From Magallana gigas (Eukaryota): a stretch of 64,000 bases of DNA. The notes below the pieces were generated by a model. The model had not been told where the DNA came from and did not search any database. It was given only the letters and a program-made list of their open reading frames with translations. The translations under genes were made by a program, and so were the position numbers. This document shows positions 2,693 to 63,000 of the stretch, in pieces (position 1 is the first letter of the stretch; the number at the start of each line of letters is the position of its first letter). Location: the NCBI RefSeq assembly GCF_963853765.1, contig NC_088855.1:46004001-46068000 (forward strand). The letters are read 5' to 3'.

Positions 2693-3511
2693 GTGACAGG
2701 GTCCAACAAAGGAATAGGTTATGCCATTGTCAGAGGCCTATGTAAACAATTTAAAGGCGATGTCTTCCTAACAGCAAGAAACGAAGAGCTCGGCAAAAAG
2801 GCCATTCAGAGCTTAAATGAAGAGGGTTTTTCTCCAAAGTTCCATCAACTTGATATCACCGACCAAGCAAGCATTGAAAGATTAAGAGACTTTTTGAAGA
2901 ACACTTACGGTGGTTTAGACATTCTGGTAAACAATGCTGGAATAGCTTACAAGAATGCATCTCCTGCCCCATTTGCAGAGCAAGCTGAGGTAACAAACAA
3001 AACCAACTACTTTGGAACCATCGCAGTATGCGACGCACTTTTCCCCTTGTTGAGACCACATGCAAGAGTAGTCCATTTGTCAAGCATGTCTAGCAGTTTT
3101 GCCATTAGAAAATGTAGTCCAGAAGTTCAAGCCAAATTCCTGAATCCAAATATCACGATCGAAGAGTTGACAGCCTTGATGAACGATTTCATTCAAGCAG
3201 CGAAAAATGGCGAGCATGAGAAGAAAGGTTACCCCAGCAGTGCTTATGGCATGTCTAAAGTTGGGATGAGTGTCCTCACGCATATCCAACAACGCCAGCT
3301 TTCTGCTGATTCTAGAGAAGACATCATTGTCAACGCTTGCTGTCCAGGGTATGTAGATACGGATATGACATCCCACAAGGGTCCGAAAACCGTCGACGAG
3401 GGGGCAGATACACCCATTTATCTGGCTCTCCTACCCGAAGGCACTAAGAGTCCTGCTGGAGAGTTTGTCGCTGATCGCAAAGTTTATAAGTTCAATGAAT
3501 ATAAAATGTGA
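2693..3511 (+). CDS. CBR1: Carbonyl reductase [NADPH] 1-like SDR, subtype A copy 1 (main coding exon; the 7-codon first exon is not found in the window)
   Basis: Acceptor ttattacag at 2692, then VTGSNKGIG (Rossmann TGxxxGIG), LVNNAG, catalytic S (LSSMSS), YGMSK (YxxxK), CCPGYV, GADTPIYLALLP, TGA at 3511. The ORF-track TTG start at 2672 is intronic. Confidence 0.9.
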   Translation: MTGSNKGIGYAIVRGLCKQFKGDVFLTARNEELGKKAIQSLNEEGFSPKFHQLDITDQASIERLRDFLKNTYGGLDILVNNAGIAYKNASPAPFAEQAEVTNKTNYFGTIAVCDALFPLLRPHARVVHLSSMSSSFAIRKCSPEVQAKFLNPNITIEELTALMNDFIQAAKNGEHEKKGYPSSAYGMSKVGMSVLTHIQQRQLSADSREDIIVNACCPGYVDTDMTSHKGPKTVDEGADTPIYLALLPEGTKSPAGEFVADRKVYKFNEYKM

Positions 3512-5585: not shown

Positions 5586-7183
5586 ATGTCGAAGAAGGTG
5601 GCAGTGGTAAGGGTTTTTCTTTCTTAATTTTACTTATTATTTAATTGTCATTTGTAAACGTACATAAAGAAATGCTAAATTATGTCACTTTGCACACTTA
5701 TAATTATTATTTATAGCAATAAAGTAATGCTAAAAGTGAACAGGTGAAGCAATCGATAAGCCCGTATTTAGCGTAACTTTGCTGATAATCATTTAGGTAA
5801 GCAAATCAATTCAGACAGTGAAAAAGGGATTTTTGCTGTAAATTCTTGAAATGAAATATTTGATTCTCTGAAGTACTTTATATCAAATGTATGTTCTTGT
5901 TCTTAATTAATTTATAAATGTTTTAATTTTCTTGTACCTTGAATCAAATACGATTTTTCTTTCGAAAGGCTACTTATGTAAATTACAAGTATGGAGGACT
6001 GTAACGGTTAATCTTCGAATGTTTCCATCGCTAGCATGCAATACCTAATGAATATTAAAAACCGTAAAAACTATTCGAAGTTCATTTTAATTTTGTTTAG
6101 CCTCTACGTTTTTCATTTTATTTTCATCTGCAAATGTTTTGCTACCAGACACGAACTATGGTACACTAGTAACCATGCATACGCACTTTCATTACCATGA
6201 ACCTTAAGGTTGTCCTTCGCAATGTTCTATCATCATGGAAAACATGCATGGTTTTAAACGATTTTTATCAATTAATTTTTCCAATGAGATTCAACTAATT
6301 TAAAAAGTTTTAAATTGATATCATCATTTTTATTTTGAATCTTGATTTATTGGTGCATGTCTGAACTTTATAGGTAACTGGATCTAATAAGGGGATAGGG
6401 TACGCCATAGTTCGAGGTCTGTGCAAGCAGTTTGAGGGAGATGTCTACCTTACTGCAAGGAAGGAGGAGTTGGGCCAGGAGGCCACCAAGAGCTTAAACT
6501 CGGAGGGACTGTATCCAAAGTTCCATCAACTTGACATCACGGACCAAGCCAGCATTGATCGTCTGAGAGATTTCCTCAAGAATACATACGGCGGTTTGGA
6601 CATCCTGGTCAACAATGCCGGAATTGCTTACAAGCAAGACTCTACGGCTCCATTTGCGGAACAGGCAGAAGTGACAATTAGGACAAATTATCAAGGTACA
6701 CTTGATCTCTGCAATGCTCTGTTTCCGTTACTGAGACCGCATGCGCGGGTTGTAAACGTTTCAAGCATGGCAAGTACCTTTGCAATTAAGAAATGTAGCA
6801 AACAGGTTCAAGCAAAGTTTTTAAACTACAAAATTACAGTCGACGACCTAACAAATTTAATGCACGACTTCATACAAGCAGCAAAAAAAGGTAACCACGA
6901 AAACAAAGGGTATCCTAGCAGCGCTTACGGCATGTCAAAGGTCGGCGTGTCAGTTTTGACAGAAATTCAGCATCGCCAACTTTCGACAGACTCGCGAGAA
7001 GACATCTTAGTCAATGCTTGCTGTCCTGGTTACGTCGATACGGATATGTCGTCACACAAAGGGCATAAAACCATTGACCAAGGCGCAGACACACCCATTT
7101 ACTTGGCTCTTCTCCCACCAGGAACCAAAAGTCCAGCGGGGAATTTTTTATCGGAAAGGAAGATTAAGAAATGGAACGAATAA
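5586..7183 (+). CDS. CBR1: Carbonyl reductase [NADPH] 1-like SDR, subtype B copy 1 (276 aa)
   Basis: Exon 5586-5606 (MSKKVAV, donor gtaagg) plus exon 6374-7183 (acceptor tttatag; VTGSNKGIG...VSSMAS...YGMSK...CCPGYV...KWNE*), joined in frame. Confidence 0.92.
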
Positions 7184-9074
7184 TCAGTACACTTCATCTT
7201 TGTTTCGTACCTTCATTTCATATAATTAAGATATGTAAATTAACTTATTTCTGTTATGAACTCTATGAACTTGTAAGAGTATAGATACCAAATTATTTGT
7301 AAAATAAACTATTTCCTAACAGGTTTTTTTTCACTTTCGGTATTATTGTTTTCCTTAGCTTTACAGCTATTCCGTGGATTTTAATTTGTATGTTTTGTAA
7401 TACCAATTAATCATAAATGTGATCTCAACCTACATTATTTCCGATTATAAATCGATAATATGTATGGATATACATCTGAGACCTTAATTTTATGTGATAT
7501 TGAACTTTACAGGGAAAAAAGAACTTACCCTTCAACTTTTATCCCAAATTTTGGTTTGTCATATATCATAATTACTTAAAATTTAAAAAGTTACAAATGC
7601 ACTGGATAGGTTGCAAAAGATGAAAAATTGAAAAGTTTTCTCAATAGCCAAAAATAACATTAAAAATTATAAAATCTGTGAAAATATGCATTTTTTAAAA
7701 TGGACATTATTAACTTTTAATCGATTAAAAAGTATGTAAAGATAACACTTAACATTTATTAGAATATGTTAATCTTACATGTTTTTCAATAATACGTAAA
7801 ATTGTCTCGAATCGTTAATAATATATCATCCGAGACATAACAAAAATTTAACAATGAGGGTGATTTACGGTAGTGTAGAAGGAAAATAATACATTAATAA
7901 AAATATTAATCTCATTCTCAATAACAATGGAATACGACAGAATTTACATACTACAAACATAGATAACGCCGAGCGCGACGAACATTTTTTGAGTAGTAAG
8001 GAATACATAACAAACACCAATTCTCAGAATACATAAAATTCAAAACCAAGGCCACCAATAAACTGGCAGTTCATACAGTATGAATAAGTACTTTAAATAT
8101 CTCTCGAAAAATTGGTTTTAGGGGTTATATGATAAAACTCATTATTTAATCTACCCCACCTCCTCAAAAAAAAATTGTTGTCAAATCTATTTGACATGCA
8201 AAACTTGGGATGGGGCAAAGACAAATCACTTTTCTTCAAATATACATGGACTAGACGTGAGCGGTGGAAATATGGAGGTGTAGTGAGAGGCCGATTTCTG
8301 TTTACTTTATACTTATTAATGTTCCTTGTAATTATTAACTCTGAGTAACTATTGAACATCACCCTCTTTTAAACAATTAATGCATGACACAAAATGCACT
8401 TAAACTAACACAAAAACATGATATTTGCAAATCACAGTCAACATGCTAACATACGGAGAAGTCAATGATATCAAGAACATGCTTTATATTCTCTAATCAT
8501 ATTGATAGATGTTTTATAACAATCAATATTCATAGTTGAAGTAAAATATTAAATTGCTGGTCATTCATGCGTCTTAACAAAGAAAACAAGCTTAATAAAA
8601 GACAATTTAAGAATATTCTATCAATTATATTATCGCTATGACACTAATGTTGTATTATCATTTCATTGATATGGATTTCTCAAAAACTGATTGTAAAATA
8701 TTCTGTACAATAAAGATGCATAAAAAATGTATAAACTCATAAAGTGAGACGTAAAAATTAACAATATACTACAACATAACAAATAAAATCTCATTATAAA
8801 CATGATCGTTTTATTCAAAATAAATAGTGATAAATAAAATTTTAAGCATTTTGAATCTGTCTCCAAAATTAAGTACAATCATAATCATATAAAGTGTCTA
8901 AATTTCTAACAACAATTAGAATGAAGTTTTCTTATAAAAATTATCAGTTATCTTAATATTTCGTTTAAAAGAAAATAAAGCCAAATCTAAAATTTTTGCT
9001 TTTGAAGTTTCTTATAATGAAACTTCTTTTCAAATCGAACTTTTTACAACATTGTATGTTAAATTAAACCTACA

Positions 9075-9555
9075 GTTTAGTTGCTTGCTTCATCTAGTCG
9101 GTGTCTGTGGTAACGACTCAAATTTCCTCAGTGATTTGGGGACCATTCTTGGTGTTGAGATAATCGGTTATTTGATATTAATTTATTACATGTATACTCC
9201 TTAATAAAAAGTAACTTTAAAATATTCCATGTATTTAAAAAATGGAGAAAATTGGAATTTAACAGTAAGTATGTTTAAGATTATATGTATTTCTGATTTG
9301 CATTTGATCCTCCTTTACCCTGATATTTCCAAAAACTGATCCTGCCTTACCTTGAATTTCCTACATTTGATCCTGCCATATCGTGATTTGCTTTCATTTA
9401 GTCTTGACTTACCCTTATTTTGGCAATATTTTATCCTGCCTTACCTTAGGTTCCAACCGGTTGCCATGTTCATTTGTCTCATTTCCAGTTTGTGTTGCTG
9501 CTCCAACTCAGCTTTCTAGAGTTTATGATCTTGTTTGGTCTTCTCCATTTCATGA
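9075..9555 (-). pseudogene. Decayed copy of the last two coding exons of the MVP-like gene
   Basis: 9075-9175 matches 45935-46025 (YLNTKNGPQITEEI..VVTTDTD) with its 5' half deleted. 9444-9555 matches exon 46625-46762 with a 1-nt deletion. No upstream exons. Confidence 0.8.
9293..9447. repeat. 31-bp minisatellite, about 5 degenerate units
   Basis: Units resembling ctacatctgatcctgccttaccctgatttgc; paralogous to the arrays at 35717-36180 and 46288-46635. Confidence 0.75.
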
Positions 9556-42331: not shown

Positions 42332-44080
42332 ATGTCGAAGAAGGTGGCAGTGGTAAGGGTTAATCTTTCTTAATTTTACTCATTTTTAGTGTATTAAAAA
42401 TCGACAGGGAGGAGGGCTTTGGGCAAAGTTCCCGGGAGCTCCTGGATTTTAGGTTTTAGCTTTTGGATTTCCCAGTTTTCTTTTTTGATAATGAGATATT
42501 GTCTCCATATGTTACATATACATACTGTACATGTGTGAGGGAAATGTTGAATTTTATAAAAATGTGTATATGAAAAACGGATGCCCCAGCGGAAACCAAC
42601 TGCATATGACTTTTGATACAAGGCGTTTTGAAACAGCTCCATTTTTACAAAGCAAAACACACAAACCTTAGATGACAAACTTTGGATCAAGTTTATAATT
42701 GTCAAATTTGAATAATTTATTAAACCAAAAAAAAGTTTAAATTTTTGGAAAGGTAAAAAAAAGTAAAATCGTCAAATGAAATCTTTCATTCTCTGAAGTA
42801 CTTTAAATTAATCAAATGTATTTTCTTGTTCCTGATTAGTTGTTTTAATTTTCTTATACTTTGAAACAAGTACGTTTTTTCTTATGTAAATTGAAAGTAT
42901 TGAAAACAGTAACGGCCATTTTTCCAATGTTTCCATCTCGGTAGTATGCAATATCTAATGCATATTAAAAACCGTGAAAAACTATTCAAAATTCATTTTA
43001 ATTTTGATTCACCCCAGTCTCCGTTTTTAAAATTTCATCTACAAATGTTTTGCTACCAGACACGAACTATGGTAACCACGCATACGCACTTTCATTACCA
43101 CATGTAAGGTTGTCCTTCGCAATGCTCTATCATCATGGAAAACATGCATGGTTTTTTTACGATTTTTATCAATGAATGTTTCCGATGAGATTCAAATAAT
43201 TCAAAAATTTTAAATTTATATCATTATTTTTATTTTGAATCTTTATTCATCTGTGCATGTCTGAACTTTATAGGTGACTGGGTCTAATAAGGGGATAGGA
43301 TACGCCATAGTTCGAGGCCTGTGCAAGCAGTTTGAGGGAGATGTTTACCTTACTGCAAGGAAGGAGGAGTTGGGCCAGGAGGCCATCAAGAGCTTAAACT
43401 CGGAGGAACTGTATCCAAAGTTCCATCAACTTGACATCACGGACCAAGCCAGCATTGATCGTATGAGAGATTTCCTCAAGAATACATACGGCGGTTTGGA
43501 CATCCTGGTCAACAATGCCGGGATTGCTTACAAGCAAGATTCTATAGTTCCATTTGCAGAACGGGCAGAAGTGACAATTAAGACAAACTACCAAGGAACA
43601 CTAGATCTCTGCAATGCCCTGTTTCCGCTATTGAGACCGCATGCGCGGGTTGTAAACGTTTCAAGCATTGCAAGTAATGCGATAAAGAAATGTAGCAAAG
43701 AGATTCAAGCAAAGTTTTTAAACTTCACAATTACAGTCGACGAACTAACGAACTTGATGAACGACTTCATACAAGCAGCAAAAAATGGGGACAACGAAAG
43801 CAAAGGGTATCCTAGCAGCGCTTACGGCATGTCAAAGGTCGGCGTATCAGTTTTGTCAGAAATTCAGCATCGCCAACTTTCGGCAGACCCGCGAGAAGAC
43901 ATCTTAGTCAATGCTTGCTGTCCTGGTTACGTCAATACGGATATGACGTTACACAAAGGGCATAAAACCATTGACCAAGGCGCAGACACACCCCTCTACC
44001 TGGCTCTTCTCCCGCCAGAAACCAAAAGTCCAGCGGGGAAGTTTTTACTGGATAGGGAGATTAAGAAATGGAACGAATAA
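42332..44080 (+). CDS. CBR1: Carbonyl reductase [NADPH] 1-like SDR, subtype B copy 3 (275 aa)
   Basis: Exon 42332-42352 (MSKKVAV, donor gtaagg) plus exon 43274-44080; VSSIAS with a one-codon deletion after it, YGMSK, CCPGYV. The intron carries an insertion of about 370 bp relative to B1 and B2. Confidence 0.92.
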
Positions 44081-45933
44081 TTCGTACTTTCATTAAATAG
44101 TTTTTATAATTAAATCTGCAATTTACTCATTTCTGCTGTGATTTATATGCTTATAACTTATGGGAGTGCAAGCACCAAATTGTCTGTAAAATAAACCATT
44201 TGCTTGCTGTGTTTTTCACTTGTGGTATTATCTAATTTTCCTTAGCTTAAATGCTATCCCGAGGATTTCAATTTATGTGTTTTATAATAACCAATTAATC
44301 ATAAGTATGATCCTGACCTACCGTATTTTCAATTATGAAATGATAATATGTATGAATATACATGTGCGACCTTTATTTAATATGATATTGAGATTTATAG
44401 GGATCAAATAACTTACCCATGAATTTTAATCTCAAATTTTGGTTTGTCATAACGTTAAATCATAATTACTTTAAATTTAGAAAGTTACAAATGCACTGGT
44501 TGAAAAATATGATATAAAATGAAAGATTTCTTAACAGCCAATAAACAACAATTAATTCTATGAAAATATGCATTTTGTAATGGACATTACTAACCTTTAA
44601 TGGAATAAATTGAAATAAAAAAGATAATATTAAACATTTATTAGAACATGTTCATCATACAAGGTTTACAATAATGTGAAAAATCGTCTCGGATCATTAA
44701 TAATGTATTATCTGAAATATAACTAAAATATCACAATAAGGGCAATTTAGCGTAAAAAATACATTTCTTCATGTCAATGTTCAAATAATAATTAATGACT
44801 AATAATAATCTCATTCTCAACGAAGTACGACAGAATTTACATAATACAAACAGAGATGACAGCGACAAACATTTTTTTATTTAATTGTAAGTAATGCACA
44901 TCAAACACCAATTCTCGGAATACATAGCGTTCAAAATCAAGGTCACCAATAAACTGGCAGTTCATACAATATGAACATGTATATTAAATATATCTCGAAA
45001 AATTGGTGTTTTATTCTAGGGGTATTCAGTTAAACACATCTTCTAACCCCCCCCTTCCCAACCTCTAAAAAAATCGGTTGTCGGTGGGCGAAGCCTAATC
45101 ACTTTTCTTCAATATACATCATTTTTCCTTATCAAGATGGACAGGAAGGTGTGAGTGAGGAGAGATATGGGAGTGTAGAGAAAGGCCAATTTTTTAATTT
45201 TAATTCATATTCCTTGTATTTATTAACTCAGAGTAATAAACACCTTCTTCCCCAAAATATTAATGCATGACACAAAATGCACTTAAATTAACAAAAAATA
45301 TTATTATGGCAAATCACAGTCAACATGCTAAGTCAATGATATCAAGAATGTTTCATATTCTCTAATCATTTGAATACCAGGTATTGTATAATAGGAATTA
45401 ATATCAATGGTTGAAGTAAAATATTAAATTGTTGTTCATTCATGTGCCTTAACAAAGATAACAAGCTTTAAAGAAGACAATTTTGACACTGATGTTGCAT
45501 TATCATATCATTGATGTGGATTTCTCAAAAACTAATTGTAAAAAGATTCTGTGAAATAAAAATGCATAGAAAAAAATGTATAACTTATAAAGTGATATAT
45601 ATAAAAAAGAATAGGATAAAATTACATAACAAATAAAATCTCATTATAAACATGATCGTTTTATTCAAACTAAATAGACATAAGTGTTAAATACAATTTT
45701 AAGCATCAAAAATCCGTCTCCAAAATGAAGTACCATCATAATCTTATAAAGTGTCTTATTTTTAAACAACAATTAAAATGAAGTTTTCTTACAAAACATA
45801 TCAGTAATCTTAACATTCCTTTTGATAGAAATGCCAAATCTAAAATTTTAAATATCCCTTTGAGGTTTTTGTAAATGAAACTTCTTTTAAATCAAACTTT
45901 TTCCACATTTTATGTTAAATTAAACCTGATGTC

Positions 45934-48900
45934 TTAGCTTGCTTTTATCCAGTCGGTGTCTGTGGTAACTACTCTTATTTCCTCAGTGATTTGGGGACCA
46001 TTCTTGGTGTTGAGATAATCAGTTAAGTTAACATTCATATCATTTAATTTCTCCAAGAATTCACAATCCCAAGCCTTATCTGCTGCATTCAATTCTAAAT
46101 TTAAAAGAATATAACATTTTGAATATCATCAATTAAATCATTTTTTATCAAGGTATTACATGTATAGTCTTCAATAAAAAGTAAACTTAACAATATTCCA
46201 TGTACTTTAAAGATGCAAAAAATTGAATTTTAAAAGTAAGTATACTTTAGAGTATACATGTATGTATTTCTGGATCTACAAACTCTAGCACATCTGATCC
46301 TGCCTTAGCTTGATTTACTTACATTTGACCCTGCCTCACGCTGATTAACCTACATCTGATCCTGTCCTATCCTGATCTGCCATCATCTTATCCCATCTTA
46401 CCCTGATTTGCCTACATCTGAACCTATCTTTCCCTGATTTACCCTAATTGATCCTGCTTTACCTTTATATTCCTACATCTGATCCTGTCTTACCCTGATT
46501 TGCTTACATTTGATCCTGTCTAGCCCTGATTTTCTTAAATCTGATCCTGGGTCCCTACCCCGATTTTTCTACATCTGATCCTGCCTTACCTTGATTTGGC
46601 TACATCTGATCCTGCCTGAATTACCTTGATTTGCCTTTGTGAAGAGAGCAGTTGTCTCCAACAGGTTGCGGTGTTCAATTTGTCTCATTTCCAGCTTGTG
46701 TTGCTGCTCTAACTCAGCTTTCTTTTGTTTATGATCTTGTTTGGTCTTCTCCATGTCATGAACTTGATAAATAATAATTCATAATGGATAATGGTTTTAA
46801 CAGAATATACAGTACTGTATCCACTACAGCATGTTTATAAGGAATTCACTCTTAAAATAATGTTGGTTTTATTGTTCCATGTCTTTAATCATATTGATAC
46901 GAATTAATTGATCATAAGATTCTACAAACAAATTACATATTAGGCTAATCAAAATCATCTGTCTTTGGCACTTTGATTTGCTTCTGTTTTACTCTACAGG
47001 AACAGAAGGATTTGATATACCCCTTACCTAGTTTGGTTCTCTCTTGTTCTTTAGAAAGCTTAAAGTCAGCAAGTTTAGCTTTCTGTTCCTCAATCTCTGA
47101 TTCTAAGCGAAGTTGTGTTCGTGATTCGATTGCAGCATTCTGCATTGCCTGCAAAAACCATTTTAAAGTTGAATAATGATTTCTTTTTAAAAAATTTCTA
47201 CACTTTTGATTTTTTGTTTTGTTTTTAACTGGTATCATATTTTAGTAATTTACAATGTCTTTAACAATGAAATTACAAAATCTCTCTCAATTTGAAATGA
47301 CATACATGTACCAGGGTAATGAATGAATCTAAATATAAAAAATTCTACTTCATTTTTTTAATTTCAGCAAGGATTGAGTCTCCTCCTTACTGCCCATGAT
47401 TTTAAACTAAATATCTATTCCTGCTATTTTCTATTTTATTCATTGGAAAATAACACAATTCATCAATGTAATCATAGAACAACTCTGCAAAGACATAGTT
47501 TTACCTGGAGACTATCACTGGCATGGTAGCCCCTGAAGACAACCTTCTGAATGCTGTACCCGATCTTGTCAGCCCGCTGGGTCAGTTGGGGGAAGGTTGA
47601 AATATCACTCAGGATCTGGGTCCGATTCAGAAACTCTTCAAACCTGACGATGTTAAAAAAGGAAATTAAAAATAATGGAGTTGTGCTGCTTGTATTGTAC
47701 AACTACAGTAAAACACGGTTATAGCGAACACCCTTATAATGAATTGACGCTTACAGCGAAGTGAAGTCTCTATTTCATGTTGTAAACTTGACGGTTATAA
47801 GGAATTACGCTTATAACGAAGTTAAATTGCCCGAGCCTGGGACTTCGTTATAAGCATGTTTTACTGTATATCACACAAACTACCGGTAATAAAATTTATT
47901 CTACGTATCTTTATTTTCTGATCATAGTTGCCATATATGGTATATCATGTTTCTTTAACTTACGAAACTTTCCCAGCAAAAGCAATGACATCTGCACATA
48001 CAGCACTGAAAAAGGAGAAATGGTTCACTTAGTATCTTCTGAGTTTTAGAAAATGTATCCCCAAATTCTGCTATTTATCATATGGAAATCCAGACGTTCG
48101 TAAAGTTTTGTTCAATTTGCTATTATTAACATTTCTGACAAACTGTAAGCTATCCATACTTAAAAACTGTCTATAGATTTGTACATGAAGATAAAAGTAT
48201 TGTAATTAACAGAATCCATATCATACATATTGATATTGTTTTCTACTCAGTACATGTACATACTTTATCATATCTGCTATAGGATCTGTTGTGGTGTTGA
48301 GCTACAAAATAAAAGAAATGGAGTCATCTGCTGTTTAATCATGTACATGTGAAACATATAAAACACTTCAATAATTCAGTTTATTACATAATTTTTAGGA
48401 CTGATAACCCTATCAATACTATATGATTTTTACACAGTAAAATTACAAATGCTGAGATAATTGTTCATTGAAACAAATGTTATAGGTGATTTAATTAATA
48501 ACATAAGCAAGATAGTGTACACACCATTTTGGTCACATCTTTCAGTTCATAAAACAGCATTAGTTTTACAGTTATCATGGTGTCATCTTGTGTTCTCACA
48601 TCCTTGACCTGTAATGAAAAACAGCACAAAATGTTAACCATTTCATTTAAAGCATGCAAAGATAAAAGCAGGTCTGCAGCATCAACTCTGAAAGTGATCA
48701 AGTGGGTTAATGGGGAGGGCCTAGCAATGCTGCTGTCTTATGCAAATAAAATAATAGAAAAAGAAGGAAATATATAATTGAAATTAAAGAGCTGGGACCA
48801 ATTTCTAAAAGCAAAATGAAACACAGATCAACAATTAATTTGCCATATCAAGAGAGGGAGGAGAGGATGCTCAACCGTGCTCCTTTCCTCTTAAACCAGT

Positions 48901-51247
48901 GCTTCGTTTTAAATTACTAGAAGGAAATGTAGAATTTTCATTCATATGATGCTTAGTATTAATGGAATAGTGATAGAAGAAATATATCTACTTTTTTTTA
49001 AGAATGAATATGTAAAAATTTTCTATCAAATGAAGTCTACCGTTTATAATATCTAACACATACATGTACCAAAGTAGATTTATTTCAAAAGTATGATTAG
49101 CTCTTGTATTGCACTGCAATTGGAGCTCTATTACTAACTGAAAGATACATATGAAACTTTCTAGGCTCTACCACAGATGGAGTATATAACTATATATTAC
49201 ATTGTAGTAGAACTGATCTGGAATGACGGCCAGCTTTTGAAATACACTTTGCCCCGGGATCATCCTGGTCTTCTCCAGGGGGTCTGTTCCATGCCATGTA
49301 AACGTATGAATCCTGAAAATTGCATATAAAATTGTAAATACATGTATATTAAAAGAATAATGCTTATCAAATTTTCTAACAAATGAACAATGCAAAATTA
49401 AACTGTTAAATTATGTCCATTTATAAATTTGTTATCAATCTTAGTTTTGATATAAAATTTTGCAATATCAACTTTTATAAATAATGCATTTACATGAATC
49501 TAGCGATAATAGTGCACAATTATACACAGCGCTAAATGATATTTATGTGATAGTGTTTATGCTGGCTTGTTACATGAAAAGTAAGAACAATATTCCTTTT
49601 AATCTACAAATCTTTCCTGCCTTAAACACTTCAGGTAGAGGGGGAAGTAAGTAAGTACCGGGTAGGTACACATGTTAGTATGTTATAAGTACAGGTACTT
49701 ACCATTCTTCAGCCTCTGGCACAAACACAGTGGGTCCCTGAACAACTCTTCTCTCTACATCTGATTCTTTCAGACGTTTGTACACAACAATCAGATGGTT
49801 GGCATCGATCTTGGTGCTTTCTTTCACGGTCACAGATTCATACAATAGGGGGTTGTTGAAAACAAAGCATGGTCTGAAAAGTTGAAATAACTGATTAAAA
49901 AACTGAATTTAATCCTTTTGATATCAATTTCTCAGCATGCAACTTTAAAATATGTGAGATTTTTTTTGAAAAATGACGAATTAGTTATTATTCACCTTCA
50001 AGTAAAATGTATTTGGTTAGGGGTCCATCTAAAGGTAGCATTTCCTTCATCTAAATCCCCATTATCAGAAATTTACTTAATTCAGTCTCATATATGCTTA
50101 CTAACTGTGCATAGGACAAATCATTGAAGTTTACATACATTCATGAATATTATTTAAATTTATGCCCTAAACATTCTGACTGACCTCTTCAAACATTTGC
50201 AAGGAAAAACTCACTAATAATAATAACCGGTAATACATGTTCTTAAGCATGCATTGACCTATAAACAGCAGCATGTTGGTGAATTGATGTTAGAATGGGA
50301 AAATATCCAATAAGTTGTCCAAGCCTGCATATGTTAATTTATAAGACTGGTCTTGGCTTTTCAACAATGTCAACAATAACATACCCCCCCCCCCCTTTTT
50401 GAAAAATCATATGACGCACATATTTAATAAGCAATGTAATCAGGGCCATTAATATACTTCCCTGATGTAATTTATAAATTTTAAGTGGTTTATAAAAGCT
50501 TACCCAGGCTTATGTTGAACTAGTCCATCTCTGTCTTTAACAACTATGTATTGATAAGGATCTGCTGTGTGTTTCTTCAAGTATTGCAATCTTTCTCTGA
50601 ATAAAAAGACCTGGAAAACGAAATTAAACATATTATCACAGGAAAAGCGGAACATTCCACAACCCTTCAATAACTGATTTAAGTGATAGGAATTTAACAA
50701 TCAGCATGTGCTTAAATTCCTGCTTTACCTCTGGAAATTCACGTATTTTTGCCAGAATCATTAATTATTATGATGTCTGCAGAATTGCATACATTTTCAC
50801 TACAAACCATCTAAAAAAACACTTTAGGTACATGAACAACTGATATTCTTCAAGACAAACTGTAGTGATAAAAGTTCTGAGAGAAAGGGAATTGTTTATC
50901 TGATGAAAAATAAAGTTCCTAATTTTTTTTTATCAAAATATTCCCGAAACTTAACTCTACTAACTTCAAACCTGATTGGCCCAGAGTCAAGGTTGAGCTT
51001 AAGATTGAAGGCATTCCTTGGCAGAATTTTAAAAGGCAATTCGACTGGGTTTTTTTTAACATGTTAAGACTGACATATGAGTGAAAAATTTTAAAATTGA
51101 AATACCGGTAGTTAAAAATCCTTTGATCATGAAAGAAATTTTTGTACAAGTAATACATACCCTTTGAGGTCCCTTGACCAGTCTTCCCTCTCCAAGGTAG
51201 TTCAAGATTACTGCCTCCTGTCCTTCCAGAACAGTTTTGAACTTCAT
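45934..51247 (-). CDS. SPFH/band-7 shoulder-domain protein with MVP-type N-terminal repeats ('mini' major-vault-protein-like, 399 aa, 11 coding exons)
   Basis: Exons 51247-51161, 50610-50504, 49873-49703, 49312-49201, 48608-48525, 48301-48264, 48005-47964, 47643-47505, 47148-47028, 46762-46625, 46094-45934. All are GT-AG, all phases are compatible, and they total 1200 nt with no internal stop. Key segments: [87 protein letters not shown], then coiled coil. Possible 5' UTR exon ending at 54822 (donor gtaaga). Confidence 0.85.
46288..46635. repeat. 31-bp minisatellite, about 11 units, filling the start of the last intron of the MVP-like gene
   Basis: Unit ctacatctgatcctgccttaccctgatttgc; on the minus strand gcaaatcagg-GTAAG-gcaggatcagatgtag. 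Confidence 0.9.
47706..47866. mobile_element. 161-bp Tc1/mariner-type MITE (TA target) in an intron
   Basis: ta|cagtaaaaca ... tgttttactg|ta; internal repeats of gcttata(a)cgaa. Confidence 0.75.
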
Positions 51248-51335
51248 TCTAGTATAAAATGACTCCTAATTTTTTAAACCTATTACCAAAAAGAATAAAA
51301 AATAAAACTAGAACTTTTTTTGTCTTCAACAAAAA

Positions 51336-52444
51336 GTAAGGGCTTTTCAACAGCCCTATAGTTTCCTTTTTTTTTTTTTAAATGTCTAAAAAATTTTGTC
51401 AAATCTATTTCCAAATTTTCTGAACACCGTGGTATAACCAGTTGCTTAAATAAGAATTCATATCAAGAAATCATTTCAAAGTAAGTATTTATTCCTTCGA
51501 CGCAAAACTTGGTATGCTGAGAGTATTTGTGCACTACATTCTTAGAGCAAAGCGAGATAACTCTTCCAAAAAATAATTTTGAAATTTAAACAAGTTATGA
51601 TCTTTAGGCCCTTCAAACCCCTATAAGGAGTCAAAAAGTGGCCCCTCGGACCATAATTTTTAAATTGTACTCTTTATTCTGAAATATTAACCGAAAAGAT
51701 TTTGAAAATCGGATGAAAAATAAAAAAGATACAGCTTAAGGGCTGTTTTCAACTTTGACCCCTCTAGATCCCTTATTTTTCAAAATTTTAATCCCAAAAC
51801 CTTTTCCGGTCTGTGTATTTGGTCCTTCATTATAAAAATTAAATATGAAAATATTTACTTGAAAACAGTTTGAGAAAACGTGGCACGCGTGAATTCAGTT
51901 TAACATTAAAACACCCATAGACGATTTTTAATCAACTTATAAAACCGGAAGTTCTCAATGGTTTCAAACGAAACTTTAAATATATGATAATTATGACAGT
52001 TTTAACATTTCCCATTCCTCATTTAACAAATTTGATGGTTATTTCAATTTTCACTTTTTTCATCCCCCCTTTTTTCATAGTTTGAAGTCTAATATCTCGA
52101 AAACAGCAAGAGATAGAAAAAAGTTGTCGCTTACAATTTTGTATATCAAACTATGAAGTATCTAAATCCAAAATTTCTTAGTTTATAATTAAAAAATAAA
52201 ATATATACAAAGGTCCTTTTACTATTTTGTTTTTTACATGTGTTAACCGGAAGTATATAGACCGGAAGTCCAAAAAGGGACATGCGGGAGAACTAAACAA
52301 TTGCTAAAAGAATCTAATTTTAAATTTTTATTTTTCGGTTCCGTTTTCAAAAAATCCATGACGAAACTTTGTCGAGAAGAATAATAATAATAAAACAGAA
52401 CGAAAACAATTGGTCTTTTCGACCGAAAGTCGAAAAGCCCTAAT
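51336..52444 (-). mobile_element. Helentron/HINE-like non-autonomous element
   Basis: On the minus strand it begins ttagggcttttcgactttcggtcgaaaagacc (sub-terminal repeat plus stem-loop), followed by ttattattattattctt, and ends agggctgttgaaaagcccttactttt (matching sub-terminal repeat, short hairpin, T run). Confidence 0.6.
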
Positions 52445-54601: not shown

Positions 54602-57085
54602 GTAATAATTATATCAATAGAAATTCATGTAAAAAATTTCATTCAAAAATCTAGGGCAGAACAAATTAGACCCGGCCTCGTTAAATTATCATGGCTTGAA
54701 GAATGATTTATCTACTTGACAATGCTGAGATAGGTTTGAAGAAGATAACTTTCATGAGAAATATTTTCAGCAATTGTTTTGCCGAAATTTGAAGTGATGG
54801 GGGATCAAATGATGATCTTACCTGTAATGTCACACATAAGATACGGTTCAAAGATGAATAGTTATCATTTAAGCTTGTTGCTACTTCAATTTATCTAAAT
54901 GTAATGACATTTTCCAACAACTCAAAGAACAAAAATCCAAAGTTAGCAATGACACAATAGCTGAATTAGTGAATAGGCTTGGCTTTTTGTAAACAAACAG
55001 AGTATGACTTCCGGGATTGCTTCCCCGAGCCCGACATAAATTCTAGCACCTCCCCCCCCCCCCCCCCCCTTTTCTAACTGAAACTTTTCTGACATCTGGA
55101 GTTAACATAACAATGGTACATAGTATTCACAAATGAAGGAAAATATTGTTTAAAATATATTGAACATATTAAAACATTATTTTAACATAAAGTATTTGTA
55201 AATAAATGTCAATTAATTCAAATCATAATTAACTACATATATCTACAAATATGGCTAGAATTAGTCCTGACTTTTACCCCTTTCTATTTGTAACCAGTAA
55301 TATTTACAAAAATTGATTTAAACCTTTGGAAATATCTATCATATCGGCATGGTATCAATCAGTAAAAAACTGATTACATCAATCAGTCGTAGAATGTCCA
55401 TAAGAAATCGAACATCAAATCAAACAACTAGTCACTAACGAAATTGTTGCAAAAATAAATGGAACAACAGTTCGTTAAAAAATGGTATGATATTAATCGT
55501 TTGATAAAAAATCTATATTTGTGCTTCAAATACTTAAAATTCATTGACGTAAATGTTATGCAATAAAACATTCTTTGGGTGACAAAAGAGTTGAAAGAAA
55601 TCAAGAAAGAAATGAATTATGTTACATGTATATATCAATGTGTGAAATCCTTTTTGACAACTGATTATATAAAATATCAATTCGTTAAATTAAATTCAGC
55701 TCGTTGCATTATGACATCATTGGAATACACTTGATGCTTTAATTCTTGAAACCGCAGATTTGTAATGTATATGGATCATGATGGATTATAATTTATAATC
55801 TTGAACAGTTGTATAATGAGTGGTCGACCCCCCCCCCCCCCCCCTTGCATTCTTATTCTATATCTGGATGTTGAACTAAATTTACTAGCTGTACTATAAT
55901 TATAATAATTTTCATTGCGTTATACAGCTTATTGGACCACTTATAACATCTTACACGTATGCTATTCTCTCTTATGTGCAATGATGAGCGAGTAAATATA
56001 TTTATAAGACAAAACATATTCAACTTTTCACAATATTTGTGAAACAAAATATCTAAAGAGTTCGTCGAAACAGGCTGGCATTGTGCAATTGTGTTAGATA
56101 TGAATAGCAGAACTTAAAACCTTATCTGTGTGGTGCAAGATGTAATGTAGGTCACCTCAAAGTTTAAAATTGAATGTCCTGATAAATAACAGGCGTACAT
56201 GCAGTGGTAAGGAGTGTGCGAGCAAACAAAAAAAAAATCAGTTTTTAGATTCGCCCTGAAGTTTTAAACAGGCATCAGCTGTTTAACGACACGGCCGCCC
56301 TGTCTATATAGAAATCAATATCAGGTAAGGAGAATATGATGTTTCCCCATCGCCATCGGACGAATATTCAGTGACGGTTATTGTAAACATTTCTTGTAAA
56401 CATTTGTTGAAAATACTCGTAAGTTATGTCTTTACAAGGGGTTTATATGAAAAAACCATTTGAAATGCTGATGCGCAGTAAATTCGGGAAGTTATAAATA
56501 CCGACATACTATAAATATTTACTGGTGTCAAATAGGTTAAAATCAGTTGAATGCAGAACGTAGGAATATTTTCCAGTAATAATCATTATCGAAGCTGTGT
56601 ATAGAATTCTATGAATCAAAATTATTCATTTTAGCTTTTATGCTACAGCTAACAGTGTTAAAAAAAAATTCACATGTTTGTGTTGTTGGGTTACTGCTCT
56701 TTTAATTTACTACGAAAGAGGGGTCGTATCAAAAACCATTTTCAAGGAAGTTTAAGAAACGTAGAATGAAAATGTTTATAAAGTCAATTTTGTTTGCGAC
56801 ACTGTTCGATGTGAATGTTAATTTCTTATATACTAGAAATAAATAAAATATTATATGGTCATTTTATAATGATTTAGATATATATTAAATTATTGTATAT
56901 ATGTGTGAATTAAGGAAATGAATGATAAATTAAGCTTCATTAATGAATATATATTAGAATTCTTAAAATAATATCTTCAAAAACACTTATGAAGATTTAT
57001 AAACTAATTTAATATGAACTCAAAACATGATATACGAAAGCACAAATTCAGTTATTAATTCATTTCAATAGTATAAAAAGTGACG

Positions 57086-60000
57086 ATGCCTAACATCGCC
57101 GTGCTTGGGGCAGGCATAATAGGTGTCTCTACAGCCTTGAACATCCAAAATCTGATTCCATCGGCTCAGGTCAAGATAATCTCGGAGAAATTTGGCCAGG
57201 AAACGACAAGTTGGGGCGCTGGAGGGTTATTTCGACCGACTGCCAAATTCATCCAAGGAGTGCCCGAAGAAAAAATACGGTATTAAACTTTGCGTAAAAA
57301 GAAATATATATATTAGTTTATAAATCTTACATTGATACAAGTCCGATACAAGTCCAATGTAAATTAGATCTTTGATTCGCTCCTACAACATTAATTGCTA
57401 CATTTACTTTTTTGTAGATCTAGGTGGAACGGATCAAAGATCTAATTTTAATTAAATTGACCTTGATACGTCATACTTTAACAAAGACAATCATATGCTC
57501 CTCCCCCGCTCCATTTTGATTAATAATCAAGCAACGGCAACTGCTATCAACAGAATAGGAGTCATTAGAAGAGCGGGTAAACTTTATAGAGAGATGGAGA
57601 ATATAATAAAAGTGGATAAAGTTCCCATTATTTTCAAATCAGCTAAATTGTTAGCTTAAATCTGTCCATTAATCTTTAAAAAAAAGGAAACAAACCGAAA
57701 GTCTGAAACCTACTGGCTGCTGCAATGTCCATTAGAAACAGTTTATCTTAATCCTTCAGCCAGCTAGCCATTAGCGCTTGCTGTGTGTTTATGTGAGACC
57801 AACAATTGTTTACATTATAAATGTTAGAATGCATGGGAAAGCATTAATCTGTGTGAAAGTTTAGTTAGAATAAATGTAGCATCCGAACCCACCACAAGTG
57901 TTATCTTTCTACTAAGCAATTTTACAATGGCGACGAGGATTTTTATTCAACTTTGAAGGAAAACACAATGGCAGAATCTGGATTACCGGTTTTTCCTAAA
58001 TTTCCTGTCCATGCTGAGGGAGCAATAGGTACCCGATGGAGGAAATGGGTACAGAGACTGGAAAACTTATTCGTTGGAATGAAAATCACAGATAACAAGA
58101 GGAAACGTGCGCTACTCCTTCATTACGCTGGCGAGGAAGTCTACGACATTTTCGACACATTTGCAGATACAGGGAATGACGAGAATTATGACCAAGCCAA
58201 AGATGCGTTGAAAAATTACTTTGAACCAAAAGTAAACAAGGAATACGAGCGGTACGTTTTCCGACAAACGAAGCAATCGGAAGGGGAAACGGTGGACACA
58301 TACCACACCCGATTGAGACAACTCGTTACAAAATGTGAATTTGCAGACAATGATAGTGAGATCAAGTCTCAGATCATACAGAGCTGCACATCATCAAAAT
58401 TAAGAAGAAAAGCACTTAGTGAGGAGATGACACTCAACAAGCTACTAGAAACGGCAAGAACATTAGAACTGGCGGAGAAGCAGGCATCGGGAATCGAAAA
58501 TAACAATTCCAGTGTAAACAAAATACACCAAAAGGAATCAGGACAAAGAACTCATCATTGGAAACCAAGGCGAAATCCAGAGCCGAGAACAAAAGGTACA
58601 TATAGACAGAGTTCTAAATGTTATAACTGTGGCGGCCATTACCCCCACAAGACAAAGTGTCCAGCATTCAAACAAATCTGTAGTAACTGTGGACGAGAAA
58701 ATCATTTCGCTGCTTATTGTAAATCAAAACCCCAGTTTAAGAAAAAACATGTTAAACAAATCCAGGACTGTGATGAAGATGATGGATACGTATTCAGCGT
58801 CAGGAACAACTCTACAACAAAACAACCAAAGTTTAATATTACGCTTAATGGGCAACGCTTTCACATGTTGATTGACACAGGCTCCAGTGTTAATATTTTG
58901 GACGAGGTCACATTTTCCAAACTGCATCCAAAACCTAAACTGAGCAAATCAAGTACAAGAATTTTCGCATATGGTTGTAAAAACGACATAAAAACGTTTG
59001 GATATTTCACTGCGACCATTGAAACAAAGTCCAAAATAGCTGTTGGAAAATTCTATGTAGTCGAAGGAAATTGTGGTACACTCCTAGGATACCAAAGTGC
59101 CGTAGATCTTGGTATCATACCAGTGATCAATCGTTTGTCAACAGATGTGAATGAAATATGTGAAGAGTTTGCTGACCTGTTTCAAGGAATTGGAAAAATA
59201 AAAGATGTAAAAGTGAAAATTCACGTCGATAAAAGCATCAAACCTACTGTTCAGCCTCACCGACGGATACCTTTCCATTTACGAAAGAAAGTAGAAGCAG
59301 AGTTAAGAAGGCTTGAGGATCTTGACATCATCGAGAAAGTAGAAGGCCCTACACCTTGGGTTTCACCAATTGTCGTTGCACCCAAACCGAAAACACCAGA
59401 TGAAATTAGGATGTGCGTGGATATGCGTTTACCTAATAAGGCAATTCAAAGAACAAGACATATCACACCTACAGTTGATGACATAATTCATGATTTAAAT
59501 GGAGCCAAAATCTTCTCAAAATTGGATATGAATGCAGGGTATCACCAAATTGAATTGGAAGAGCAATCAAGATACATAACGACGTTCACAACTCACGTAG
59601 GATTGCGCCGATATAAACGTCTCAACTTTGGCATTTCATCAGCTGCTGAAATTTTTCAAGAGACTGTTAGTGAATCACTCCAAGGCTTACAAGGGGTAAA
59701 GAATATGAGTGACGACATCATAGTGTATGGGGAAACACAAGAACAACATGATACGCGTTTAAGAAAAGTCATGGAACGGCTACGGGAGCGCAACATAACA
59801 CTAAACCGACCAAAATGTGAGTTTAACAAACAAAAGCTATCTTTTTTTGGCTATGTATTTTCCGCAGATGGCATTTCAGCTGATCCTGCTAAAATACAAG
59901 CTATCAAGTCAGCGAAAAGTCCAACAAACACAAGTGAAGTGAAAAGTTTTCTTGGAATGACAAATTATGTATCTAGATTTATTCAAGATTACTCAACAAT

Positions 60001-63000
60001 TACGCAACCGATAAGGATTCTCACACAGAAGAATATGGCGTGGAAGTGGGAAACGAAACAACAGTTGGCGTTTTAAAAGCTAAAGAATTCACTTACAAGT
60101 GATACTGTTATGTCATACTATGACCAGAACAAATCAACGGAAGTAGTTGTTGATGCAAGCCCAGTTGGACTTGGAGCTATCCTTTCCCAGGAAGGAAAAA
60201 TTGTTGCGTATGCAAGCAGATCATTGACCCAAGTAGAACAACGTTATTCACAAACAGAAAGAGAAGCGTTAGCCATCGTTTGGAGCTGCGAACATTTTCA
60301 CTTGTACATATACGGATCCAGGTTTACATTGGTTACTGACCATAAACCGCTAGAAAGTATATTCAACAATCCGAAATCAAAACCCCCTGCAAGGATTGAA
60401 AGATGGCGTTTGCGTTTGCAAGCATATGATTTTCATGTCAAATATAAGAAAGGAGTTGACAACCCAGCCGACTATATGTCCAGACACCCGGATATACGAA
60501 CCGATGAGAATGGATCAAAAGAAGAAAAAATAGGGGAAGAATTTGTCAACTTTGTTGCACAACATGCTGTCCCAAAAACTGTTACTTTATTGGAAGTAGC
60601 GGAAACCACAGCAAATGATGCAAATCTACAAATGGTTATTCAAAATCTGAGGACTGGAAAATGGAAAACTAAATCTGACAATATGTCAATGCAGTCGTTT
60701 TACAAACTAAGGAACGAGCTGTGTATTGGAAAACATGAAGAGATGGAAATTCTTTTAAGAGGATCAAGACTAGTGATTCCTTCATCACTACAGAGGAAAA
60801 TAGTCGACATAGCACATGAAGCACATCAAGGCATTGTTAAAACGAAACAATTGCTAAGGGAAAAAATTTGGTTCCCTGGAATCGACTCAATGGTAGAAAA
60901 CCTATGCAAATCTTGCATCCCATGTCTATCATCTGTTCCTGCCAACAAGATAGAACCGTTGAGGATGTCAAAGCTACCAAACAAACCGTGGTTGGAAGTA
61001 AGCGTAGATTTTGCGGTCCTTTCCCATCCGGAGAATACTTACTAGTGGTAATTGACGACTATTCGAGATATCCGGAGATAGAAATTGTATATTCAACTTC
61101 AGCAAGATCAACAATGACGAAATTGGATAAGATTTTTTCTACACATGGAATTCCGAATATTGTCAAGACAGACAACGGACCTCCATTTCGAAGCCATGAA
61201 TTTAACGAATTTACGAAATATATGGGATTTACGCACCGTAAAATTACACCATTATGGCCAAGAGCTAATGGAGAAGTTGAACGGTTTATGCGGACCATAG
61301 GGAAAGTTGTCAAAACATCGCATGCAGAGAGCCGCAATTGGAAACAAGATATTTTCCAATTTCTGAGAAATTACCGAGCAACGCCCCATTCTACAACAAA
61401 AGTTCCACCGGCGGAAGCTTTATTTGGAAGAAATATAAAAGTTCGTCTTCCGGAAAACCCTAAAACAACGAAATTCAGAAAAACGGAAATGCGGAGACGG
61501 GATGAAAATCAGAAACAAAAGATGAAACATTATGCAGACAAGAAAAATAATGCGAAGCATTCATCTTTAAGAAAGGAAGACAGAGTTATTGTTCAACAAA
61601 AGAAACGCAATAAACTATCTACTCCGTACGAAATTGAGCCATTGGAAGTCATAGGGAAAAAGGGATCCATGATAACAGCATCAAATGAAAACAAAACCGT
61701 TACAAGAAACTCCAGTGCATTCAAAGAAATAAAACCAGCAGAAGTTATTATTGACCAGTCTGATAAATGCGATAACGGAGATGTAAACAACCCAGAAACC
61801 AACACAGAAACAACGAAGTCTCCAGATGCGATACCAATGACTCCGCGCTATAATTTAAGGCAGAAAACAAATCGTCCAGCATATCTAGATGATTATGTTT
61901 CCAAGTAAAAGATAACAAGTCGTGTTGAGAGGCATAATAATCCTCTGGCTTGTTCCGTGTAGTTTAGTTTTATAATCAATCTTGTAGTTATTAAATATGT
62001 ATAAATGTTGTGAGTGACTGATAACATCTTATAAACAAAAGGAACATTTCTATTTACATTTAATTTGGACAATGTTAATATCAGTGATAATTTCATAAGA
62101 GACTTTCATAAACAAACAATAAATGAACACAATTAAAATTCAAAGGAAAGGAGGGATGTAATGTCCATTAGAAACAGTTTATCTTAATCCTTCAGCCAGC
62201 TAGCCATTAGCGCTTGCTGTGTGTTTATGTGAGACCAACAATTGTTTACATTATAAATGTTAGAATGCATGGGAAAGCATTAATCTGTGTGAAAGTTTAG
62301 TTAGAATAAATGTAGCATCCGAACCCACCACAAGTGTTATCTTTCTACTAAGCAATTTTACAGCTGCTTAAAGATGTGATCTGAATTATATTGCAGGAGA
62401 TGGGCTCGGGTAGGATGGGATTTCTACTCTTCTCTTGCAGTGTCAGATAAAGCTAAAGATTCGGGGATGCAAATAGTCTCTGGGTTCATACTTAGTCAAA
62501 CGAAGGTCGAGGTATGTTGAAAGAGAAATGCAGGCACACGAATACGAATGTTTTGCATTACCCGGGTTTTAAATGACTTGCTTTTCTTCTTAAATAAGAT
62601 TCTAATGATTATGAAAAAGATATGTATAATTTGAGAGCAATCAGTTTATACTTCGGGAATTAAATTGTATGGTCAACAAATCAAATCATCCTTAAAATTG
62701 TAGAAATGAATTTTTAAGCCGTATACTATGTTTAGCGAAGAGAAAATCTTCCCATTTTAGCATTAAAAAACATTGAATAATTTCCTATATTATGACACTT
62801 AGCTCTTTTCTAAAGGAAATTAATATACATATAGTCTTAACATGACCAGGACCATCCAACCTCTTAATGCAGAGCATATTGTAAGAAAAACATGGGGAAG
62901 TAACAATCATTAATCTGAAAAAAGGAAACTTCAGTATAAGCGTACCCCGAGTCACAATGATATAGTGTTGGAATTAGCGGGATGTTAATATGTTCACAGC

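Follow-up and report, generated by a model that had tools for sequence, protein, structure and literature searches.

The canonical vault is a particle of 78 subunits arranged in two halves. Its major vault protein (MVP) consists of nine tandem five-stranded beta repeats, an SPFH-type shoulder and a cap helix of about 155 residues. Shorter MVP homologues are on record from Naegleria gruberi (530-559 residues; PMC3595041) and from Asgard archaea (five repeats; PMC12962969); they have fewer than nine repeats and keep the shoulder and the cap helix, and smaller closed cups have been proposed for such short MVPs from modelling (PMC3595041, PMC12962969). Here we analyse a gene of the oyster Magallana gigas that lies in a 64-kb window of a chromosome-scale contig (G000:C3:46004001-46068000; positions given without a contig are those of this window) and whose product is, according to the structural models described below, a soluble 46-kDa 'mini-MVP'. 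As in MVP, tandem five-stranded beta repeats are followed by an SPFH-type shoulder and a long cap helix, in the same order and in register with MVP residues 321-783, and neither protein has a membrane anchor. However, mini-MVP has three repeats instead of nine and a helix of about 109 residues instead of about 155, its sequence contains no recognisable cap-ring region, and it represents a separate family, which the oyster carries alongside canonical MVP and which is also widespread among bacteria. It also differs from the short MVPs of Naegleria and the Asgard archaea: these contain at least five repeats and are identifiable as MVP or MVP_shoulder, whereas mini-MVP has three repeats, scores with the Pfam model Band_7, occurs as a protein of about 400 residues in animals and bacteria, and has a bacterial gene context of its own. 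We put the probability at roughly 0.55 that mini-MVP is a three-repeat vault-like protein of an ancient family that forms a small cup or cage and whose role is tied to NAD+ or ADP-ribose.

RNA evidence shows the oyster gene to be genuine and expressed. A preliminary description of the locus had assembled eleven small exons into a single open reading frame (ORF) of 399 residues, and RNA data confirmed this model (Table 1). The exons lie on the minus strand, all introns are of the GT-AG type, and the coding parts add up to 1200 nt including the TAA stop codon. Nine of the ten coding introns gave RNA-seq joints that coincide exactly with the predicted borders (two contig runs, two raw polyA runs; 45600-51450), and in reads from the exons the first mate lay on the plus strand only, which fits minus-strand RNA. 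The joint between exons 10 and 11 was absent from the reads and present in the transcript contigs L097-L099, where alone the donor at 46625 was confirmed. All exons are collinear in these three contigs, each of which comes from a different public run, and the transcript product P0129 (399 residues), the representative of a cluster of 83 sequences, is 99.25% identical to the spliced genomic model over residues 1-399. Furthermore, an additional non-coding 5' exon, outside the coordinates given before, is spliced to 51279, and at 51281 an RNA contig runs into a loose end whose sequence matches 54824-54853. Thus, the exon count rises to at least 12, and the gene begins about 3.7 kb upstream of the end coordinate in the preliminary description.

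We modelled the full-length protein with AlphaFold2 from a 50-sequence alignment, which gave a mean predicted local distance difference test score (pLDDT) of 87.5. The model contains beta strands up to residue 150, an alpha/beta SPFH domain at residues 154-255, one continuous helix (257-365) and a short one at 370-377. The predicted layout is one of MVP-type beta repeats at about residues 1-40, 41-84 and 85-125, an SPFH/shoulder region at about 126-256, a helix of about 109 residues (257-365) that would correspond to the vault cap helix, and a conserved short C-terminal helix. When the whole model was searched against the PDB with Foldseek, the top 12 matches were all MVP (E 3e-15 to 1e-10), and erlin, flotillin, stomatin, prohibitin and HflK/C ranked after them with E values of 4e-8 or weaker. 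Superposition with VIA-align placed model residues 1-388 on MVP 321-783, that is on repeats R7-R9, the shoulder and the cap helix, with a Z score of 16.5. Non-MVP SPFH proteins superposed from about residue 84 only and with Z scores of at most 12.6, the value reached by the stomatin SPFH domain (root-mean-square deviation, rmsd, 1.9 Å over 109 residues). Identity to MVP in the structural alignments was 14-19%.

The N-terminal part was tested on its own by folding residues 1-152 separately (pLDDT 93.6). The 16 best Foldseek matches of this segment were all MVP, with the next match at a probability of 0.10, and in a comparison with 48,161 representative chains a Z score of at least 5 was reached by two chains only, both of them MVP. 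The segment matched MVP at R3-R5 (rmsd 2.5 Å over 128 residues) and at R7-R9 (rmsd 3.1 Å over 142 residues). Moreover, the three repeats at residues 1-40, 41-84 and 85-125 align with one another as hhalign profiles (E 5e-5, 8e-4 and 4e-4) and share a 'G ... GP' pattern. Together, the AlphaFold2 model, Foldseek, VIA-align and the internal repeats support the architecture claimed in the preliminary description, namely MVP-type repeats, about three in number, followed by an SPFH shoulder and a cap-type helix of about 110 residues. An N-terminus unlike MVP repeats, part of the contrary outcome that it had named, was not observed: residues 1-152 match MVP only. No hydrophobic or membrane segment was found in the protein, the maximum 19-residue Kyte-Doolittle mean being 1.45. 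A complex prediction with two copies returned a score of 0.00 and no answer, and so speaks neither for nor against self-association.

At the level of sequence, the oyster protein passed the Pfam model Band_7 (PF01145, clan CL0433) with 26.3 bits against a cut-off of 23.6, over residues 87-284. The same model was matched by 36 of the 50 relatives, and sub-threshold matches to Vault_3 were present in eight of the 50. An hhalign comparison of the family profile with the exon of the oyster's canonical MVP gene that encodes the end of R9 and the shoulder gave a probability of 70% and an E value of 4e-5 over 109 columns (family residues 106-220), and the exon 3 motif RRVVQGP aligns with RVVFGP of MVP R9. 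Three of the four blocks of MVP collinearity that had been proposed by eye were recovered by this one profile alignment; the fourth, at the start of the helix, was not recovered at the sequence level, although it lies within the structural superposition. In the same kind of comparison, neither the cap-helix exon of oyster MVP nor a two-repeat Vault exon aligned significantly with the family. Pfam searches of single exons yielded nothing useful, and a phmmer search of exon 3 against PDB sequences yielded nothing, because the exons are too short.

The relatives of the gene form a family of their own. A search of 1.84 billion representative sequences with the 56-residue exon 3 returned 105 relatives, among them full-length proteins of about 400 residues that match in the same place and longer ones with two to four matches each, the latter being the first sign that the segment is a repeat. 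About 135 proteins, most of them 390-415 residues long, were retrieved when the Aplysia orthologue served as query. Orthologues of about 390-410 residues occur in molluscs, nemerteans, an annelid, crinoids, hemichordates and sponges, and also in some protists; in databases, relatives are named 'uncharacterized' or 'Band 7 domain-containing', and the closest named ones are from other oysters (Crassostrea virginica, Ostrea edulis and Saccostrea; 83-86% identity). A scan that took one genome for each bacterial and archaeal species yielded at least 161 bacterial loci with 38-50% identity over about 375 residues, chiefly from Planctomycetota, Verrucomicrobiota and Myxococcota, with others from Acidobacteriota, Armatimonadota, Omnitrophota and further groups. 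In a set of 112 members from animals and bacteria, identity reaches 90% or more at 75 positions. The oyster protein has all of the traits that define the family: a length of about 400 residues, three GP-containing repeats, and the motifs EWxHxFxWHG, FYYNVxDVRTxDD and DPIADxINA.

In an unrooted maximum-likelihood tree of 126 sequences ('quick' search), a branch divided the bacteria (82 rows, support 99) from the animals, which grouped with one protist (38 rows, support 98). The animal sequences include two paralogue clades with sponges in each, so the duplication is old. The oyster itself has a second mini-MVP paralogue, which belongs to animal clade B (G000:C8:45470128-45477472, minus strand; 39-45% identity over matched exons), as well as a canonical MVP gene on the same chromosome as the gene studied here, 8.4 Mb away at G000:C3:54.45 Mb. 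Further matches to Pfam MVP_shoulder or Vault lie at G000:C9:21384442-21499827 and G000:C2:35761533-35761688 and may be extra MVP-like genes or fragments. The preliminary description had called the gene product a half-size MVP paralogue. A half-size relative of MVP it is; a shortened copy it is not, because the family has members in bacteria and the tree keeps these clearly apart from the animal ones, which points to an ancient sister family. Judged by its sequences, the mini-MVP family is ancient, strongly conserved, slowly evolving and separate from canonical MVP. Neither NCBIfam nor PADLOC holds a model for it, and we found no paper on a three-repeat MVP-like family in animals and bacteria in a search that omits most subscription journals.

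To place the bacterial members in their gene context, ORFs from 80 bacterial loci were clustered and the neighbours were named with Pfam and NCBIfam. One bacterial clade has a conserved same-strand NAD+/ADP-ribose neighbourhood in 54 of its 57 loci. The most frequent neighbour is an NrtR-type Nudix/winged-helix regulator (48 loci), followed by an isochorismatase-family protein of the nicotinamidase type (PncA; 45 loci), a Nudix hydrolase nearest to ADP-sugar pyrophosphatases (40), an ADP-ribosylglycohydrolase (ARH; 37), glutamine-dependent NAD synthase (NadE; 29), Tpt1/KptA (28), nicotinate phosphoribosyltransferase (PncB, NAPRTase; 26) and a microbial PARG (14). The set spans an NAD+-using transferase, erasers of ADP-ribose, ADP-ribose breakdown, resynthesis of NAD+ from nicotinamide and an ADP-ribose-sensing repressor, and the placement of the bacterial genes in operons for NAD+ recycling and ADP-ribose removal suggests a function for the family. 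The likeness to NrtR NAD+ salvage operons and to ARG-centred systems for ADP-ribose reversal (PMC9503650) is one of gene content, with NrtR, ADP-ribosylglycohydrolase, PARG, Nudix proteins, Tpt1 and NAD+ salvage enzymes in common. The description of the ARG-centred system names chaperone-like and effector partners and no Band 7 or MVP-like component (PMC9503650, section 3.8), and our literature search, with the same coverage as above, found no paper with a Band 7 or MVP-like gene in NrtR or ADP-ribose operons. In some members of a second bacterial clade, from Gemmataceae and related bacteria, an MshEN domain lies N-terminal to the mini-MVP module (L056:2427-4238 and L096:5389-7221). MshEN is a domain that binds cyclic di-GMP. 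Some mollusc relatives carry the database name 'type II secretion system protein E N-terminal domain'. Pfam finds no MshEN in these proteins, and we suspect that the name was carried over from the bacterial MshEN fusions.

The same chemistry has been described in the vault. Human MVP has a basic NAD+ pocket between two subunits, formed by R504, K506, R507, P508, H509, R511 and L517 of the R9 'keyhole loop' and by P565 and K573 of the shoulder (PMC12280208). ADP-ribose is present at the shoulder of native and reconstituted vaults, TEP1 is an NADase of TIR-like type, and the known ADP-ribosyltransferase of the vault is PARP4 (bioRxiv 10.64898/2026.05.01.722283). In the hhalign alignment, which is weak at the level of single residues, the invariant WHG and DP-NKTR loop of mini-MVP (residues 128-138) lies opposite MVP 500-511 and the DPIAD-INA motif (193-201) lies opposite MVP 566-574, both in the numbering of human MVP. 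Both are among the most conserved stretches of the family. Going by these sequences, a counterpart of the MVP nucleotide pocket in mini-MVP is a candidate and a lead.

In the explanation that we favour, mini-MVP would most likely assemble laterally into a small, membrane-free homo-oligomeric cup or cage, because every structurally solved protein with an SPFH domain plus helix, MVP included, closes into a ring or cup. Probably, and with less certainty, it would have a biochemical role tied to NAD+ or ADP-ribose, by binding or buffering them or by scaffolding enzymes that use or remove ADP-ribose. We propose this role because bacterial members sit in NrtR-type operons for NAD+ salvage and ADP-ribose removal, and because MVP binds NAD+ and ADP-ribose at the junction of R9 and the shoulder, the best-aligned segment between the two families. 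Several observations weigh against this explanation. The assembly of mini-MVP is argued by analogy, and the two-copy prediction gave no answer. The link to NAD+ and ADP-ribose is drawn from bacterial gene order alone, and the 23 loci of the second bacterial clade have no NAD+/ADP-ribose neighbours, so that the operon association is not universal. Animal genes, to our knowledge, are not organised in operons, and a tblastn search of the oyster window with the bacterial operon proteins found no NAD+/ADP-ribose genes near the gene. MVP pocket residues are not kept one for one (N200, for example, stands opposite K573), and the loop alignment is a 70%-probability hhalign alignment that is unreliable per residue. 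Furthermore, the Pfam check proposed in the preliminary description was positive for Band_7 and negative for the vault models: the oyster protein had no above-threshold match to Vault (PF01505) or Vault_2/3/4, and MVP_shoulder (PF11978) matched neither the protein nor the locus. A six-frame search of the genome with PF01505 found the canonical MVP locus and not the mini-MVP gene. By Pfam criteria the oyster protein is thus not a canonical MVP. A search of PDB sequences with the family profile returned chance coiled-coil matches only and no MVP, which means that the relationship to MVP is visible solely by structure and by profile-profile comparison.

These points leave room for other explanations. 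The protein might be a regulator or adaptor that binds nucleotides and works as a monomer or in small oligomers, using the MVP/SPFH fold without building a cage. The lack of an oligomer signal from the two-copy prediction, which gave no answer, leaves room for this idea, the strong conservation of surface motifs fits binding of a ligand or partner as well as it fits an assembly interface, and the MshEN fusion in the sister bacterial clade is what one would expect of a signalling protein. We nevertheless find it doubtful, since the proteins with SPFH plus helix examined in a 2026 review all build large rings or half cages (PMC13100048), and a solvent-exposed single helix of 109 residues is unlikely to be stable without lateral packing. 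Mini-MVP could instead be an accessory subunit of the canonical vault that co-assembles with full-length MVP and, for example, caps or shortens particles. Such a role would suit a protein that is in register with MVP from R7 through the cap helix and has the canonical MVP gene on the same oyster chromosome. Yet the family does well in bacteria, none of whose loci analysed here showed an MVP-type neighbour, identity to MVP is just 14-19%, and the same 75 near-invariant positions in animals and bacteria suggest a self-contained function, so that we regard an accessory subunit as unlikely.

Two further explanations fare worse. That mini-MVP is an ordinary membrane-scaffold SPFH protein of the stomatin/prohibitin type with a superficial likeness to MVP agrees with Band_7 being the sole above-threshold Pfam match and with the database name of its relatives, 'Band 7 domain-containing protein'. 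The membrane SPFH cage proteins (stomatin, prohibitin, flotillin, erlin, HflK/C and QmcA) do share the SPFH domain and long helix with it, with Z scores of 11-12.6 from residue 84. But mini-MVP has no transmembrane or hairpin segment and no lipidated N-terminus, and has MVP-type repeats in that place instead; nothing in stomatin, prohibitin, flotillin, erlin or HflK/C corresponds to residues 1-83, and residues 1-152 match MVP repeats alone in the PDB, which makes a membrane scaffold very improbable. Least credible of all, and hardly worth entertaining, is that the gene reflects a recent transfer from bacteria, a contaminant or a decaying truncated duplicate of MVP. The unusually high identity to bacterial proteins (up to 50%) and the decayed partial copies of the 3' end of the gene nearby might suggest so, but the gene has eleven RNA-confirmed spliceosomal introns in a chromosome-scale contig and an intact ORF, its orthologues extend to sponges, a well-supported branch divides animals from bacteria, and the decayed copies are limited to exons 10-11. 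The explanation of mini-MVP as an ancient vault-like protein forming a small cup or cage also has a more specific form, in which it would be the core component of a small vault-like cage free of membrane, one that would bind or enclose NAD+ or ADP-ribose and cooperate with the writers, erasers and recyclers of ADP-ribose, the NAD+ connection of the vault being inherited from a bacterial module. This form is possible and we hold it tentatively, the odds being against it.

Table 1. Exons of the mini-MVP gene and the parts of the protein that they encode; positions are those of the 64-kb window.
Feature	Position	Strand	Content and evidence
Non-coding 5' exon	54822..55008 (approximate; upstream end is a minimum)	-	GT donor at 54821-54820; contigs L097-L099 continue into exon 1
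Coding exon 1	51161..51279 (coding 51247-51161)	-	32 nt of 5' untranslated region, ATG at 51247, residues 1-29, start of repeat A
Coding exon 2	50504..50610	-	Residues 30-65, last part of repeat A, first half of repeat B; RNA junctions
Coding exon 3	49703..49873	-	Residues 65-122, end of repeat B and repeat C; RNA junctions
Coding exon 4	49201..49312	-	Residues 122-159, invariant WHG, loop aligned to MVP 'keyhole loop', first shoulder strand
Coding exon 5	48525..48608	-	Residues 160-187, SPFH/shoulder strands, DVRTxDD motif
Coding exon 6	48264..48301	-	Residues 188-200, DPIAD motif, first shoulder helix
Coding exon 7	47964..48005	-	Residues 200-214, shoulder helix
Coding exon 8	47505..47643	-	Residues 214-260, remaining SPFH domain and start of long helix
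Coding exon 9	47028..47148	-	Residues 261-301, long helix resembling the cap helix
Coding exon 10	46625..46762	-	Residues 301-347, long helix
Coding exon 11	45746..46094 (coding 46094-45934)	-	Residues 347-399, end of long helix, short helix 370-377, low-confidence tail; stop codon 45936-45934; 3' untranslated region reaches at least 45746

Within the gene, intron 10 contains a minisatellite with a 31-nt unit (46290-46617, about 10.5 copies), whose minus-strand unit resembles the end of exon 10 together with a GTAAG donor. It thereby sets a row of decoy donor sites at the start of the intron, and use of the next such GT would lead to a frameshift and an early stop. Very high RNA depth on both strands was seen at 47560-47951 (intron 7) and 51284-51450 (upstream of coding exon 1), where most reads continue into unlike sequence; these stretches look like copies of abundant repeats outside the transcript of the gene.

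Elsewhere in the window, two decayed minus-strand copies of the last 1.6 kb of the gene lie at 34576-36289 and 8267-9555 and extend from exon 10 through intron 10 and exon 11 into about 770 bp of flank. Their nucleotide identity to the gene is about 77%, and there are stop codons in their exon-like parts. Open frames of 268-285 residues on the plus strand with a start of the VTGSNKGIGYAIVRGLCKQF type (2654-3508, 6374-7180, 29023-29847, 32718-33524 and 43274-44077) resemble what we take to be an intronless carbonyl-reductase-like short-chain dehydrogenase. Each decayed copy is 1-2 kb downstream of one of these dehydrogenase-like intronless ORFs, as is the 3' end of the real gene, and the decayed copies may have arisen with duplication of the dehydrogenase-like gene. 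Matches resembling exon 8 at 43063-43098 and 32493-32534 had E values of about 5-10 and were set aside as chance. Upstream of the gene, three long open frames on the plus strand (57869-61905; 735, 322 and 355 residues) are, at a guess from their size and layout, a retroelement.

The function of vaults has been an open question for four decades. Mini-MVP presents MVP-type repeats in a far smaller protein of about 400 residues, found from planctomycetes to oysters, which should be easy to express. Its bacterial context points to NAD+ salvage and ADP-ribose removal, the same chemistry that cryo-electron microscopy in 2025-2026 has tied to the vault shoulder, and the bacterial members offer a tractable system in which to ask what vault-type shells are for; the protein may also be a minimal self-assembling cage for engineering. 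If mini-MVP does form a cage linked to NAD+ or ADP-ribose, the NAD+ connection of the vault (the MVP pocket, PARP4 and the TEP1 NADase) would stem from a bacterial module and would not be a eukaryotic add-on, and many invertebrates would retain a minimal form beside their full vaults. For oyster biology, the analysis gives a name to a conserved, expressed gene that has so far been annotated as 'uncharacterized' or 'Band 7 domain-containing'.

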